From Anaeramoeba ignava BMAN (taxonomy: Eukaryota > Protista > Anaeramoebae), in the NCBI GenBank assembly GCA_028826165.1, contig JAPDFW010000116.1:62001-126000 (forward strand): a DNA stretch of 64,000 nucleotides. Direction: 5' to 3'. The notes below the pieces were generated by a model, which saw only the letters and a list, made by a program, of their open reading frames with translations, did no database searches and was not told where the DNA came from. Position 1 is the stretch's first letter. Every line of letters starts with the position of its first letter. Of the stretch, positions 18,422 through 61,814 are shown piece after piece. Both the position numbers and the translations under genes were made by a program.

Positions 18422-21400
18422 ATGGATAATAATAATAATAACCAAATTCAAAATGCAAATCAAAATCAAAATGAAAATGAAATGAAAAATTTAGAAAAAA
18501 AAGTAACAAAAAATTTAATTAAAAATTATTCAAACCTTTTAAATGGAAATTCATTTAAAGATTTTTCAATTTTTGTTGAGAATAAATCAAATCCTTTTGA
18601 AATTAAAGTTCATAAATCAATTTTATCTTCAAGATCTTCTTTTTTTAATGAGTTTTTAAAGGGCAAGAATCATCTCTTTATTTCTTTAAATCAATTTAAT
18701 AAAAAGAAATGGAATCAATTTTGAGTTATATTTATTATGGAAATATTTCTTTTGAGAATCAAGAAAATCTTATTCAATTATTAGAAATTTCAATTTATTT
18801 TAAATTAAATTTATTGAAAGAAATTATTCAAAAAAAAATTTTAAATTCAATTAATTATTCAAATTTTTTCCAATTTTTATTCCAAAATCGAAATTTAAAT
18901 TCAAATGAAATTGAAATAAAATGTTTTGAATTAATAAATCAAAATTTTTCCCAAATTCAAAATAATGAGAATTTATTCAATTTAACTAAAGAAGAAATTA
19001 TCAAATTTATTCAATTTAAACAAGAAAAAAAAGAAATTTTTCAATTTGATTTTTTTCAATTTTTAAATAATTGGATTGAAAAAAGAATTGAAAAATTAAA
19101 AGGAAAGAAAGAAAAAGAAAGAGAAATTGAAAAGAAAAGATTATTTCATTCTTTTTTTTCATTATTTGATAAAGATTCAATTTCAAAACAAGATTTTGAT
19201 AAATTAAAACAATTTGATATTTTTCTTCCAAAATCTTTTTTAATTGAAAACAAAGAGAAAGAAATTGAAGAGAATCAAAAAGAAATTGAAAACAAATTTA
19301 TTCAAGAGAATCAACAAATGAAAATTGAAATTGAAGAAAAAGATAAGGAAAACCAACAAATGAAACCTATTTTTGATAAATATCAACAAAAATATCAAAA
19401 ATATTTGGAATTTGAAAAGAAATTAGAACCAATTAAAACCAATTTTCCTCAATTTTCAGAAACAAGAATTATTACAGAAGAAGAATATGCTAAGAAATTA
19501 CAAGAATGGATAAATGATAATGATTTTTTTTCTAAAATGAAAAAAGGATTTTCAACAAAAAGAGATGGATTTGATTGTGAAAATTGGCATAAAGCAGTTG
19601 ATGGGAAAGGAAAAACATTAGTTATTATCAAAACAAAAGATAATTTTATTTTTGGAGGTTTTACTCAAGTTGGATGGACAAATGATAAATCAAAATGGAG
19701 AGAAGAAGATAGAAATAGGGATGATGGATTTATTCCAGATTCAAATGCATTTATTTTTTCATTAAGAAATGATAAAGGAGATAGAAAACCAGAGAAGTTT
19801 ACAATTAGAAAAGAACAAGAAGAATATGCAATTTTTTATAATTTAGAGGTTGGTCCAACTTTTGGATGTAAATATAAATAATTTATATTTAATAAATATT
19901 TATTATTATAATTAAAATTAAATTAATAAATAATTCAAAATATTAATATAATAAATAATATCATTATTTCAATTTAAAATAAAATTAATTTTAAATTAAA
20001 TTATTATTAATTATTATTAAAATTAATTATTTATCTTTATTAAAATAGTTCGTAAATAATTTATATTTAATAAATATTTATTATTATAATTAAAATTAAA
20101 TTAATAAATAATCCAAAATATTAATATAATAAATAATATTATTATTTCAATTTAAAATAAAATAAATTTTAAATTAAATTATTATTAATTATTATTAAAA
20201 TTAATTATTTATCTTTATTAAAATAGATAGTAAATAATTATATTTAATAAATATTTATTATTATAATTAAAATTAAATTAATAAATAATCCAAAATATTA
20301 ATATAATAAATAATATTATTATTTCAATTTAAAATAAAATTAATTTTAAATTAAATTATTATTAATTATTATTAAAATTAATTATTTATCTTTATTAAAA
20401 TAGATGGTAAATAATTTATATTTAATAAATATTTATTATTTATAATTAAAATTAAATTAATAAATAATCCAAAATATTAATATAATAAATAATATTATTA
20501 TTTCAATTTAAAATAAAATTAATTTTAAATTAAATTATTATTAATTATTATTATTAAAATTAATTATTTATCTTTATTAAAATAGCTGGTAAATAATTTA
20601 TATTTAATAAATATTTATTATTTATAATTAAAATTAAATTAATAAATAATCCAAAAATATTAATATAATAAATAATATTATTATTTCAATTTAAAATAAA
20701 ATTAATTTTAAATTAAATTATTATTAATTATTATTAAAATTAATTATTTATTTTTATTAAAAATAGATAGTAAATAATTTATTATTTAATAAATATTTAT
20801 TATTATAATTAAAATTAAATTAATAAATAATCTAAAATATTAATATAATAAATAATATTATTATTTTAATTTAAAATAAAACAATTTTAAATTAAATTAT
20901 TATTAATTATTATTAAAATTAATTATTTATCTTTTATTAAAATAGTTCGTAAATAATTTATATTTAATAAATATTTATTATTATAATTAAAATTAAATTA
21001 ATAAATAATCCAAAATATTAATATAATAAATAATATTATTATTTCAATTTAAAATAAAATTAATTTTTAAATTAAATTATTATTAATTATTATTAAAATT
21101 AATTATTTATCTTTATTAAAATAGATTGTAAATAATTTATATTTAATAAATATTTATTATTATAATTAAAATTAAATTAATAAATAATCCAAAATATTAA
21201 TATAATAAATAATATTATTATTTCAATTTAAAATAAAATTAATTTTAAATTAAATTATTATTAATTATTATTCAAATTAATTATTTATCTTTATTAAAAT
21301 AGATTGTAAATAATTTATATTTAATAAATATTTATTATTATAATTAAAATTAAATTAATAAATAATCCAAAATATTAATATAATAAATAATATTATTATT

Positions 21401-21650
21401 TAAATTTAAAATAAAATTAATTTTAAATTAAATTATTATTAATTATTATTAAAATTAATTATTTATCTTTATTAAAATAATTATAGCTGATATTTTTTTC
21501 ATCTTCACTTTAGCAACTGGTTATTCAAATTTTGGTCTTAGTTATAATCTACCTAATGGAATTGAATGTGAAACAGATGAAGCTAAAAGTTATTTAGCTG
21601 GTTCTTTTAATAAATGGAAAGTTGATGAAGTTGAGACTTATTTCATTTAA
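18422..21650 (+). CDS. BTB/POZ - coiled coil - TLDc protein; large exon 18422-19867 (probable 1-nt error near 18705), up to eight 3-nt micro-exons, terminal exon 21487-21650
   Basis: BTB (FKDFSIFV..IKVHKSILSSRS.FF; ILSYIYYG). TLDc (RDGF...WHKAVDGKGKTLVIIKT..FIFGGFT; AFIFSL; GPTFG). Terminal exon reads DIFFIFTLATGYSNFGLSYNLPNG..SYLAGSFNKWKVDEVETYFI*. Confidence 0.85.
19868..21486 (+). repeat. Tandem array of nine near-identical 174-181-nt GT..AG introns separated by eight 3-nt candidate exons (TTC 20049, ATA 20227, ATG 20404, CTG 20586, ATA 20767, TTC 20946, ATT 21125, ATT 21303)
   Basis: Every junction reads ...TTTATTAAAATAG|NTN|GTAAATAATT...; the triplet is the main site of substitution between units. 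Confidence 0.9.
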
Positions 21651-46769: not shown

Positions 46770-51631
<4,862 letters not shown>

Positions 51632-57025: not shown

Positions 57026-60000
57026 TTAAATTTTTTTGAAAAACTTATTAAAAAGCCATCTGAGTGAAATAAAAATGAAAAGAAGGAAGATAATTGTAGT
57101 AATCAATTCTTTCCAAACGAATTTATCAGCATTTTTCATTTTCTTGATAATTGATCTTTCTTTTTTTGCAAAATGAAGAGGAAATGAATTTGGATTGATC
57201 AAATAAAGTTGAGAAACTTCTTGAAGTTGTTTAAGTTGTAAATAATTAAGAGTTTGGTCAACTTTATCAAAATATAAACCTTTGACAAATTGTTGAATAA
57301 TTTTATAGCTTTTTTGAGTTATATCTTGAAAAGAATTGCTTTTAATTGATATTTGGTTATTATTATTGTTATTATTATTATTGTTATTTTCATTTGAATT
57401 TTCATTTGAATTTTCATTTGAATTTTCTTCAATTTGATCAAAATAATCACTTCTTGCAAATAAAATCAATTTGTGAACTAAAACTTTGTTTTTTTCAACA
57501 ATAATTTGAAAATCTTTAGTCGAATTATCTGAATATAATTTGGCGAAATCTTTTGAAAAATTGCTTAAATTTTGTTGATAATCACTTGAGGGTAAAGTGG
57601 TTCCAATTTCTTTTGTGATTTGAATAAGTGAACTAAGATAAAGAGGATCAAGAACTCCTGAATAAATGTATTTCATGAATTCTTTGACAATTATTAAAGT
57701 ATATTTTTTCAAAACAGAAAGTGTTTTTTCTAGTTTTTTTTCTCCAATTCTTGCTTTAAGAATCAATGAATGTGATCTTGTTGTTCCGTTTGAACAATCA
57801 ATATCAATATCTGTATATGCTTGATCAGTAAATAATTCATAGAGGTCTTGGCCAAGTGGTGAATATTGTTTAATTTGCGTTCTTTTTGAAACATTATGCA
57901 ATGAATTTAATGCTTTCTTTGAATATTTTTAAATAAATTTTTTAAATAAATTTTTAAATAAATTTTTAAATAAATTTTTAAATAAATTTTTAAATAAATT
58001 TTTAAATAAATTTTTAAATAAATTTGTAAATAAATTTTTAAATAAATTTATAAATAAATTTGTAAATAAATTTTTAAATAAATTTGTAAATAAATTTTTA
58101 AATAAATTTTTAAATAAATTTGTAAATAAATTTGTAAATAAATTTATAAATAAATTTTTAAATAAATTTTTAAATAAATTTTTAAATAAATTTTTAAATA
58201 AATTTTTAATTTCAAACAGTTCTGATTTTTTCATCTTCTGTTGTTAAATATAAAATTCGTAAAGTATCTAATGAACAATTTTGAGTGCAAGCATATATTA
58301 ATGCATGTTCATTTTGTTTCTAAAGTTTTTTATATATTTTTAAATTTAAATTTAAAATTAATTTAAAATTAAAATTAAAATTAATTCTAAACATTAGATG
58401 ATTCTAAAGGACATCCTGCAACAACTAAAGCATAAATAATTGCAGAATCAACTTGTTTTTGAATTCCAATATGTAAAGCTCGAAATCCCTTTCAAATTTC
58501 AAATTTTTAATTTTTAATTTTTAATCTTTAATTTTTAATTTTTTAATTTTTAATTTTTAATCTTTAATCTTTCATCTTTAATTTCAAATTTTTAATTTTT
58601 AATTTTTAATATTTTTAATTTTTAATTTTGAAAACAAAATACAAAAATAATTTCAAATATTTTTTTTAATATTTAATTTTAATTTCTTAAAAATTTTTAA
58701 TTTTTAATATTTACAACCTAATTTTGAAAACAAAAATACAAAAATAAATAGCATTTCTTAAAAAAATTTCTTATCAAAAATAGCAAACATTCTAATTTTA
58801 AAAAAATAAACAAATTTTAAAATGAAAATTAATAATAAAAATAAAAATAATAATTATTAACATTTTTCGAATAAACATTTGCTCCTTGTTCAATTAAATA
58901 ATTAACAATTTCTATTTTTCCTGAAATTACTGCATTATGTAATGGTGTATATCCCTAAATTTCAATTAAAAAAACAAGAAATGAAATTAAAAACAATTTT
59001 TTTTAAAAGAAAAATTTAAATCAATTTTACTTCCTGAAAAAAATATAAATAATTAAATTGAAAATTAAATTAAAATTAAAATTAAAAATTACTTTCTAAA
59101 AATTAAAACAAAGTTAAAAATTAATTTTTTTTTGTAACAAAATAAATATATAAATATATATAAATATATATAAATTATTTTTCAAACATTTTTCAAATTT
59201 ATTTTTGCTCCATTTTCAATAAGAAGTTTTATAACTTGTACATCTGCTCCATGTAAACATGCAAAATGTAAAGGTGAATTTAACTGAATAAATAGAAATT
59301 TAAAATTAAAAAGAAACTAAAAAGAAACCTTTTTTTTTCGTTAAACAATTTTTACATTCTTTTTTCAAAATGAAAAAAATATAAGAAGATTTTTTGTTTA
59401 ATTAAAAAATTTTTACATTCTAATAAAATTAAAATAAATTTAAAATAAATTGAATGAAAATCAAATTATATTTTGAAAAAATTTTACATCAACAATTCTT
59501 GGATCAGCAGAACCTTCAATTAATACTTGAAAACTTTCTAATGAAACTAAACTAGTGCAAGCTTTATGAAGAGAAGTTTGATTCTTTAAAGAAAATAATT
59601 TTTTTATAAATTTTTCCAATTAAAATTAAAATAACAAATTTTACTGACTAAAGAATATCAAAAAGAAAAATATAAATTTCCATTTTGAAAAAAAAGAATG
59701 ATTTAAATTACTGACTAAAAAATTAAAATTAAAATTAAAATTAAAATTAAAATTAAAATTAAAATTAAAATTAAAATTAAAATTAAAATTAAAAATTAAA
59801 ATTAAAATTAAAATTAAAATTAAAATTAAAATTAAAATTAAAATTAAAATTAAAAATAAAATTAAAATTATTTTTGTTTTCAAACATCTGGTTCATTTGG
59901 ATTTGAACCTAATGTAATCATCATAATTAATGCTTCTGGTGTTGGTTTATTTTTACATAAAATATGAAGAGGGATTTCTTGCTATTAATTATTAATTAAT

Positions 60001-60942
60001 TATTTTTTTTAAAAACAGAAAAAAAGTTTAAAAAATTTGAAAGAATAAAATCAAAAAATACATTCTAAATAAATTAATAAATAAAACAATTAATATAAGA
60101 AATAGAAAAAGAAAACGATTAATTAATAAAGATTACATACTAAAATTTATTTATAATTTTAATAATAAATTTATTTACAATTTTAATAATAAATTTATTT
60201 ATAATTTTAATAATAAATTTATTTATAATTTTAATAATAAATTTATTTATAATTTTAATAATAAATTTATTTATAATTTTAATAATAAATTTATTTATAA
60301 TTTTTAATAATAAATAAATTTATTTATAATTTTAATAATAAATTTATTTATAATTTTAATAATAAATTTATTTATAATTTTTAATAATAAATTTATTTAC
60401 AATTTTAATAATAAATTTATTTTATTTTAATAATAAATTTATTTACAATTTTAATAATAAATTTATTTTTTTAATAATAAATTTATTTACAATTTTAATA
60501 ATAAATTTATTTATAATTTTAATAATAAATTTATTTATAATTTTAATAATAAATTTATTTATAATTTTAATAATAAATTTATTTACAATTTTAATAATAA
60601 ATTTATTTACAATTTTAATAATAAATTTATTTATAATTTTAATAATAAATTTATTTACATTTTTTAAAACAACATCAGAACCGGCAAAAATAAGTGCACG
60701 TAAAATTTCAGGAAGAATATTTTGAACTGAACAAGCATAATGAAGTATGGTTTCATTCTTAATAAAAAATAAAGTAATTAAGAAAACACGTTTTTTTTTA
60801 TTATTTAATTTTGATTTTAATTTTAATTTTAATTTTAATTTTGATTTTTTACTCCAGAATTTGATAAATCAAGTTTTTCTTTTAAAATTTGTTCAACTTT
60901 AAATAAATCATTTAAAGCAACTGCTTCTCTTAATCTTTGCAT
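57026..60942 (-). CDS. Ankyrin-repeat + tandem BTB + C-terminal TM protein; main exons 60942-60853, 60757-60659, 59981-59886, 59583-59488, 59283-59188, 58954-58862, 58488-58393, 58319-58218, 57916-57026, plus ten 3-nt micro-exons
   Basis: One ankyrin repeat per phase-0 exon (NETILHYAC, QEIPLHILC, NQTSLHKAC, LNSPLHFAC, GYTPLHNAV, GFRALHIGI). BTB motifs (YTDIDI..SHSLILKAR; KDFQI..VHKLILFARSDYF). Terminal ITTIIFLLFIFISLRWLF helix. Confidence 0.88.
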
Positions 60943-61061: not shown

Positions 61062-61814
61062 ATGGAGAATTTAGATAAAACCCAAATGGAGTTTATGAAT
61101 GATGAATACTGCATTGTTGTGGATTTAAATGATAAACCACAACGTTCTGAAACTAAAATCAAATGTAAAAAAAATTTGATCTAAAAATAAAAAAAAAAAT
61201 CTTAAAAAAAAATCTTAAAAAAAAAAATCAAAAATATTCGGAATGAAAATAATTGAAATAAAGGCCATCAAGAAAATATTCTTCACAGAGCTTTCAGTGT
61301 TTTTATTTTCAACACAAAGAATGAATTATTACTTCAAAAACGTTCAGAAAATAAAATAACATTTCCCAATGTTTGGACTAATACATGTTGCTCTCATCCT
61401 TTATATAATCAACAAGAACTCCAAGAGAAAAATCAAGAAGGAGTTAAAAGAGCAGCAATTAGAAAGCTAGAGCATGAATTAGGAATTCATAATGAAGTAA
61501 AATGGGAAGAAATTATTTTCATAACACGCATTTATTACGAAGCAAAATTTGATGATAAATGGGGAGAACATGAAATTGATTATATTCTTTTGATTCATAA
61601 AGATGTGAATGTTCAGATTAACTACAACGAAGTGTCAGAGATTAAATATGTGAATGAGGATGAGTTGAAAAAAATTATTGAAGAAGGAAATGTTTCACCT
61701 TGGTTTAAATTAATTTCAGAAAAATTTTTGTTTGATTTATGGGAAAAATTAAAAGAAAAAGATTATGATTTTAATAAAGGAAATGATTTTTCAAAAATTA
61801 TTCATTTAAAATAA
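61062..61814 (+). CDS. IDI1: Isopentenyl-diphosphate delta-isomerase type 1; exons 61062-61164 and 61264-61814
   Basis: KCH..LHRAFSVFIFN..LLLQKRS..KITFPNVWTNTCCSHP, AAIRKLEHELGI, WGEHEIDYIL, SPWF. Confidence 0.95.

Follow-up and report, generated by a model that had tools for sequence, protein, structure and literature searches.

Paired single-codon exons, probably spliced in, at the hairpin tips of an Anaeramoeba ignava ankyrin-BTB gene

In the window, the 64,000-nucleotide stretch of A. ignava DNA analysed here, a minus-strand gene for an ankyrin-BTB protein carries ten 3-nt cassettes, arranged in five pairs between exons that each encode one ankyrin repeat. The micro-exons are very likely real, and we consider it probable that the cassettes are translated 3-nt exons routinely included in the main mRNA of this gene. 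The preliminary description had proposed the splicing of consecutive single-codon exons into the mRNA. That proposal is strongly supported by transcripts of sister genes, not by the gene's own cDNA, so for the window gene itself we infer inclusion from its sisters. Exons of 3 nt have been known as rare single cases; in A. ignava they form a genome-wide class, placed back to back and at variable residues of binding domains.

Structure of the ankyrin-BTB gene

The gene lies on the minus strand, starting with an ATG at 60942 and ending with a stop at 57026. Its capping exon is followed by seven exons of ankyrin type, and the last exon combines a BTB match with a hydrophobic tail (Table 1). Beyond the span originally assigned to it (58393-60757), the gene includes its first exon, one exon of 34 codons and a BTB exon of 296 codons. 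The large ankyrin exons of 99, 96, 96, 96, 93 and 96 nt are all open and in phase 0, every splice site of the gene is canonical, and there is no stop among its ten triplets. Pfam Ank matches were found in four of the seven ankyrin exons, two of them over the cut-off, and these four exons cover Ank positions 2/3 to 32; these matches, together with a paralog structure model of pLDDT 92.6, identify the repeats as ankyrin (PF00023). The BTB domain was recognized by a partial match to PF00651 (E 3e-7), which makes the Cullin-3-type adaptor of the preliminary description a putative one. ABTB1-like proteins combine N-terminal ankyrin repeats with a following BTB region, and the window gene has the same order; unlike them, the Anaeramoeba family is expanded and its member in the window has a hydrophobic C-terminal tail. 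The long introns at 60140-60658, 59715-59885 and 57917-58217 (minus strand) consist of simple satellites in which AG is nearly absent from the transcribed strand. A divergent neighbor at about 61090-61730 on the plus strand, some 150 nt from the ATG, is presumably an isopentenyl-diphosphate isomerase, judged by its motifs.

Table 1. Features of the ankyrin-BTB gene and of the cassette array in the BTB-TLDc gene (positions in the window)
Feature	Position	Strand	Remarks
Exon 1, ATG, N-terminal capping repeat	60853..60942	-	90 nt; aligns to residues 1-30 of paralog transcript protein P0151
Ankyrin exon, 99 nt	60659..60757	-	Pfam Ank positions 3-32
3-nt exon TAT (Tyr), pair 1	60137..60139	-	AG/GT flanks; preceded by 519-nt satellite-filled intron
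3-nt exon AAT (Asn), pair 1	60062..60064	-	AG/GT flanks; D-N in paralog transcript at pair-1 junction
Ankyrin exon, 96 nt	59886..59981	-	no Pfam match alone; 20/28 end residues identical to P0151
3-nt exon TCA (Ser), pair 2	59712..59714	-	AG/GT flanks
3-nt exon TCA (Ser), pair 2	59645..59647	-	AG/GT flanks; K-T in paralog at pair-2 junction
Ankyrin exon, 96 nt	59488..59583	-	weak Pfam Ank match
3-nt exon AAT (Asn), pair 3	59417..59419	-	AG/GT flanks; N-E in paralog at pair-3 junction
3-nt exon AAT (Asn), pair 3	59356..59358	-	AG/GT flanks
Ankyrin exon, 96 nt	59188..59283	-	Pfam Ank E 1e-7
3-nt exon AAA (Lys), pair 4	59093..59095	-	AG/GT flanks; K-S in paralog at pair-4 junction
3-nt exon GAA (Glu), pair 4	59031..59033	-	AG/GT flanks
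Ankyrin exon, 93 nt	58862..58954	-	Pfam Ank E 8e-9
3-nt exon AAT (Asn), pair 5	58789..58791	-	AG/GT flanks; D-T in paralog at pair-5 junction
3-nt exon GTT (Val), pair 5	58715..58717	-	AG/GT flanks
Ankyrin exon, 96 nt	58393..58488	-	aligns to P0151 residues 203-234
Control intron, 73 nt, no cassette	58320..58392	-	both tip residues in next exon
Final ankyrin-like exon, 102 nt	58218..58319	-	aligned to P0151
Last exon: BTB region, hydrophobic C-terminal tail, stop	57026..57916	-	Pfam BTB E 3e-7, residues 127-173; tail common to P0151
Nine near-identical introns with eight 3-nt cassettes between them, TLDc-domain loop	19868..21486	+	phase 1
TLDc cassettes	20049, 20227, 20404, 20586, 20767, 20946, 21125, 21303	+	cloned 174-181-nt introns

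The ten cassettes between the ankyrin exons

All ten AG-NNN-GT cassettes lie where the preliminary description had placed them, with the same triplets and with AG before and GT after every one of them; the introns within pairs, described as 58-72 nt long, measure 72, 64, 58, 59 and 71 nt. The sixth junction likewise serves as the internal control it was said to be: a single 73-nt intron (58392-58320) holds no cassette, and K-Q opens the next exon. Each micro-exon thus has canonical AG and GT flanks and a spliceable intron on either side. A. ignava introns are reported to be 91.9% A+T (PMC11550330), and the cassettes could in principle be chance motifs in such introns, with repeats that are naturally 31-32 residues long, as in the NCBI models. 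Exactly two AG-NNN-GT sites are present in each of the five composite introns, whereas spacers other than 3 nt, in the range 0-12 nt, account for 0-2 sites in total. Among 2000 dinucleotide shuffles the mean was 0.48 cassettes and the maximum 4, and none reached the observed 10. Elsewhere in the window, a 5-nt AG..GT cassette with clean intron-like flanks is present at 51423-51427 (minus strand).

Transcripts of sister genes contain the single-codon exons

Three NCBI models were compared with the full-length EukProt proteins that fall into the same 90% clusters; judged by their names, these proteins are transcriptome-assembly ORFs. Two-residue inserts are the sole difference: P0151 has five relative to NCBI model P0001, P0152 has one relative to P0009, and P0154 has seven relative to P0017. 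The transcriptome-derived proteins of three paralogs therefore have two extra residues at 13 of 13 junctions, all absent from the NCBI models. Wherever cassettes could be compared with genomic DNA, their codons specify exactly the inserted residues (9/9): in L050, AAA and AGT correspond to the insert KS, and in L037, GCT corresponds to A, AGA and GGA to RG, AAT and AAT to NN, and AAA and TCT to KS. In these paralogs, the triplets are thus retained in the mature transcript. The NCBI models checked (P0001-P0031) omit the micro-exon residues, giving repeats of 32 residues versus 34 in the transcripts. This omission, seen in the models of all paralogs checked, is what the chance-motif explanation has in its favor; the shuffle test, the length spectrum of the spacers, the exact transcript matches and the stop-free triplets all oppose it. 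The transcript-derived proteins refute it for the family, and for the window gene it is most improbable.

The closest paralog of the window gene is P0151, with 47-50% identity in the last exon. When the exons of the window gene were placed singly on P0151, exactly two residues were left over at the same five junctions, and when they were placed on the NCBI model instead, none were left there. The P0151 residues at these junctions are DN, KT, NE, KS and DT, compared with the predicted YN, SS, NN, KE and NV, so that three of ten predicted tip residues are identical between the window gene and its expressed paralog. The window gene's own protein was not found in protein searches run exon by exon. 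This absence, along with the satellites that have swollen several of its introns, would fit a family that uses micro-exons but in which the window gene is silent or its cassettes unused, the mRNA joining the large exons directly or retaining introns. We regard such a state as very unlikely, since the exons are open and in phase, the splice sites canonical and the triplets stop-free, and the three residues are shared with an expressed paralog.

Distribution in the family, the genome and a second species

Several cassettes, mostly paired, are present in 21 BTB-bearing paralog loci of A. ignava. Junctions that lack two consensus residues mostly hold two cassettes, three that lack one residue hold one cassette each, and those that lack none have short single introns; this 2/1/0 rule is broken at a few paralog junctions. 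A relaxed motif searched in 58 A. ignava loci gave 132 matches with a 3-nt spacer, versus 4-18 for each of the other spacer lengths between 0 and 12 nt. Stop codons are absent from a set of 157 triplets in which 14 would be expected from the flanking composition (P about 4e-7), and the GC content of the cassettes is 0.20 versus 0.10 in the flanks, as expected of coding constraint. The comparison of micro-exon residues with those of intronless ankyrin repeats had only 14 repeats to draw on.

Across the A. ignava genome (42.8 Mb, 147 contigs), a strict pattern gave 844 matches at 3 nt, versus 72 at 2 nt, 70 at 4 nt and 104 at 6 nt. The reversed-pattern control for 3 nt gave 381 matches, and the neighboring spacer lengths are therefore the better comparison. 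The roughly 770 matches above neighboring lengths are a lower bound, as the strict pattern missed most of the cassettes of the window gene itself. In a separate array at C1:409302-412866 (minus strand) of genome G000, about 28 listed cassettes of 3 nt lie roughly 75 nt apart and share a nearly constant flank; their triplets are highly varied.

In genomic DNA of two strains of A. flamelloides, a cassette pair is found at junctions that are two residues short, and full-length junctions are mostly without a cassette; chance motif matches in long introns of this species were left out of the count. The two strains are 98-100% alike in the flanks, too close to reveal selection. Single AAA cassettes occur in A. 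flamelloides L062 (416 and 7650) and L065 (711 and 6713) at junctions where both tip residues are already present, and a three-residue tip would result if they were used.

Position in the ankyrin fold and a model for splicing

The exon register places the cassette residues at ankyrin positions 2 and 3, in agreement with the earlier claim that they are among the positions randomized in designed ankyrins; both belong to the high-entropy positions that one such library randomizes (PMC4308713). An AlphaFold model of P0151 puts the inserts in the loops between repeats, and the pLDDT of the ankyrin region was 92.6 with the inserts and 91.4 without them, so the models did not separate included from skipped forms. 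Every one of the 144 introns at 48 two-cassette junctions has GT-AG ends; their minimum lengths are 52-56 nt and their median lengths 67-76 nt. An A at position +3 is present in about 91% of micro-exon donors versus 69% of the preceding large-exon donors (P 0.002). Within these introns AG and GT are rarer than expected, although the shortfall is modest (AG, 136 versus about 205 expected), and no clear branch-point motif was found in them above the AT background.

These features suggest a model in which three phase-0 introns interrupt the ankyrin hairpin at consecutive codon boundaries, after positions 1, 2 and 3, each a full GT-AG intron with a minimum length of about 52 nt. A 3-nt exon has no room for a spliceosome at either end of it at once, so the introns are most likely recognized individually, by intron definition in a pre-mRNA that is extremely AT-rich and has few AG and GT dinucleotides, and removed in turn. 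Removal one by one would add one codon per step, and the end product would be an ordinary ankyrin-BTB protein with repeats of 33-34 residues. Either intron gain or the duplication of a unit made of one intron and one codon may have given rise to the arrangement, and duplications of repeats and of genes could then have carried it through the family. We rejected zero-length recursive sites (an AG/GT ratchet) as an account of the cassettes, because three bases per site are kept in the paralog transcripts and the 58 loci hold only 8 sites at 0 nt compared with 132 at 3 nt. The GTT exon of pair 5 starts with GT and could double as a zero-length site.

Comparison with known micro-exon systems

Isolated 3-nt micro-exons are known from animals, in mouse Ncam, Drosophila troponin T and cytohesin-1 (PMC8042270, PMC6314551). 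Like those of Anaeramoeba, they encode one codon each and keep the frame, and that of cytohesin lies at a ligand-binding site. The animal exons are single and included tissue-specifically, whereas those of Anaeramoeba form consecutive pairs in many repeats of at least 21 paralogs and, in assembled transcripts, give no sign yet of regulation. Plant micro-exons of 1-15 nt number 2,398 in ten species, with 9 nt the most frequent length (PMC8831610), and resemble the Anaeramoeba exons in being mostly included, tied to protein motifs and overlooked by annotation. In A. ignava, by contrast, 3 nt is the dominant class, within one genome and in tandem. The flanking introns of plant micro-exons are removed successively, which makes them the best working model of mechanism for Anaeramoeba, where sequential removal is, by this analogy, most likely (PMC8831610).

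The micro-exon genes (MEGs) of Schistosoma also have very short exons in runs, mostly multiples of three, but their exons are mostly 15 nt, form most of a secreted protein and are accompanied by known splice variants and long introns (PMC10526429). The single codons of Anaeramoeba alternate with one-repeat exons, belong to a folded, presumably intracellular domain and are separated by inner introns of 52-91 nt. Membership in the MEG family was rejected, the micro-exons making up only 30 of about 1690 coding nt. Brown-algal ROCO and NB-ARC-TPR genes, with one repeat per exon, are likewise a large repeat-binding family built of modular exons, and the modularity of these LRR/TPR receptors has been proposed as a source of binding diversity (PMC3341825, PMC11378527). 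In brown algae whole repeats are reported to be shuffled or skipped, whereas in Anaeramoeba the exons correspond to individual contact residues.

A literature search that covered few subscription papers found nothing on Anaeramoeba micro-exons and no report of consecutive single-codon exons family-wide at binding-loop positions. The genes offer a natural system for studying how successive exons that are too short for exon definition are spliced and how introns originate at neighboring codon boundaries, and many published Anaeramoeba protein models are without their loop-tip residues.

Inclusion versus skipping of the cassettes

In line with the preliminary description, which suggested that skipping could tune the binding surface, the exons could be real and yet skipped at meaningful rates, yielding up to four isoforms per junction, or 1024 over five junctions, all in frame and with differing hairpin tips and binding specificities. 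If regulated, such skipping would be a new way to generate recognition diversity. Every cassette is symmetric, in phase 0 and located where contact residues vary (PMC4308713), and the similar pLDDT with and without inserts (92.6 versus 91.4) leaves room for shortened forms. At the sixth junction, moreover, P0151 (residues 225-236) is two residues shorter than the window gene. In the P0151 gene, on contig C93, this junction lies across a satellite intron that is over 1.3 kb long (L032 1-1330, partial), and the shortening may be either a true deletion or skipped cassettes. Both residues are nevertheless included at 13 of 13 transcript junctions, although these are assemblies, which report the major form only, so that minor skipping would be invisible in them. 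There are as many cassettes as the fold requires and none left over to choose among; the micro-exon donors are strong; and skipping would merely delete tip residues, never exchange them. We therefore consider frequent skipping in the window gene rather unlikely and routine inclusion the better explanation.

Intron-plus-codon arrays in BTB-TLDc genes

A second gene in the window, encoding a BTB-TLDc protein (18423-21650, plus strand), contains eight 3-nt cassettes (Table 1). Its introns are 92-100% identical, with no internal AG or GT in the eight units counted. The cassettes all have T in the middle position and lie in phase 1, so each codon would be built from two neighboring cassettes. Among the eight units, the difference per site is 0.49 in the triplets versus 0.013 in the introns, about 38 times higher. 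A 21-nt signature of the unit occurs 348 times in the genome, compared with once for a control; the signature arrays reach about 16 units and in paired cases (C21, C13 and two on C1) lie directly before TLDc last exons. The arrays show that intron-plus-codon units multiply by tandem duplication.

The corresponding TLDc loop has 1-12 residues in 100 or so paralog models. The arrays, with up to about 16 cassettes, exceed these loops, which suggests a possible choice among micro-exons there and lends skipping some support; the TLDc arrays are the better candidate for combinatorial use than the ankyrin gene. Tentatively, single-codon exons might act as a codon-by-codon diversifier of binding surfaces in the expanded BTB adaptor families of Anaeramoeba, skipping or choice varying the hairpin tips of ankyrin-BTB proteins and writing the variable loops of BTB-TLDc proteins. 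This proposal is doubtful as a whole and likelier for the TLDc arrays than for the ankyrin gene of the window; if true, a single-celled eukaryote would be generating a recognition repertoire by splicing. The first exon of the BTB-TLDc gene shifts frame near 18690-18715, perhaps through a homopolymer assembly error.
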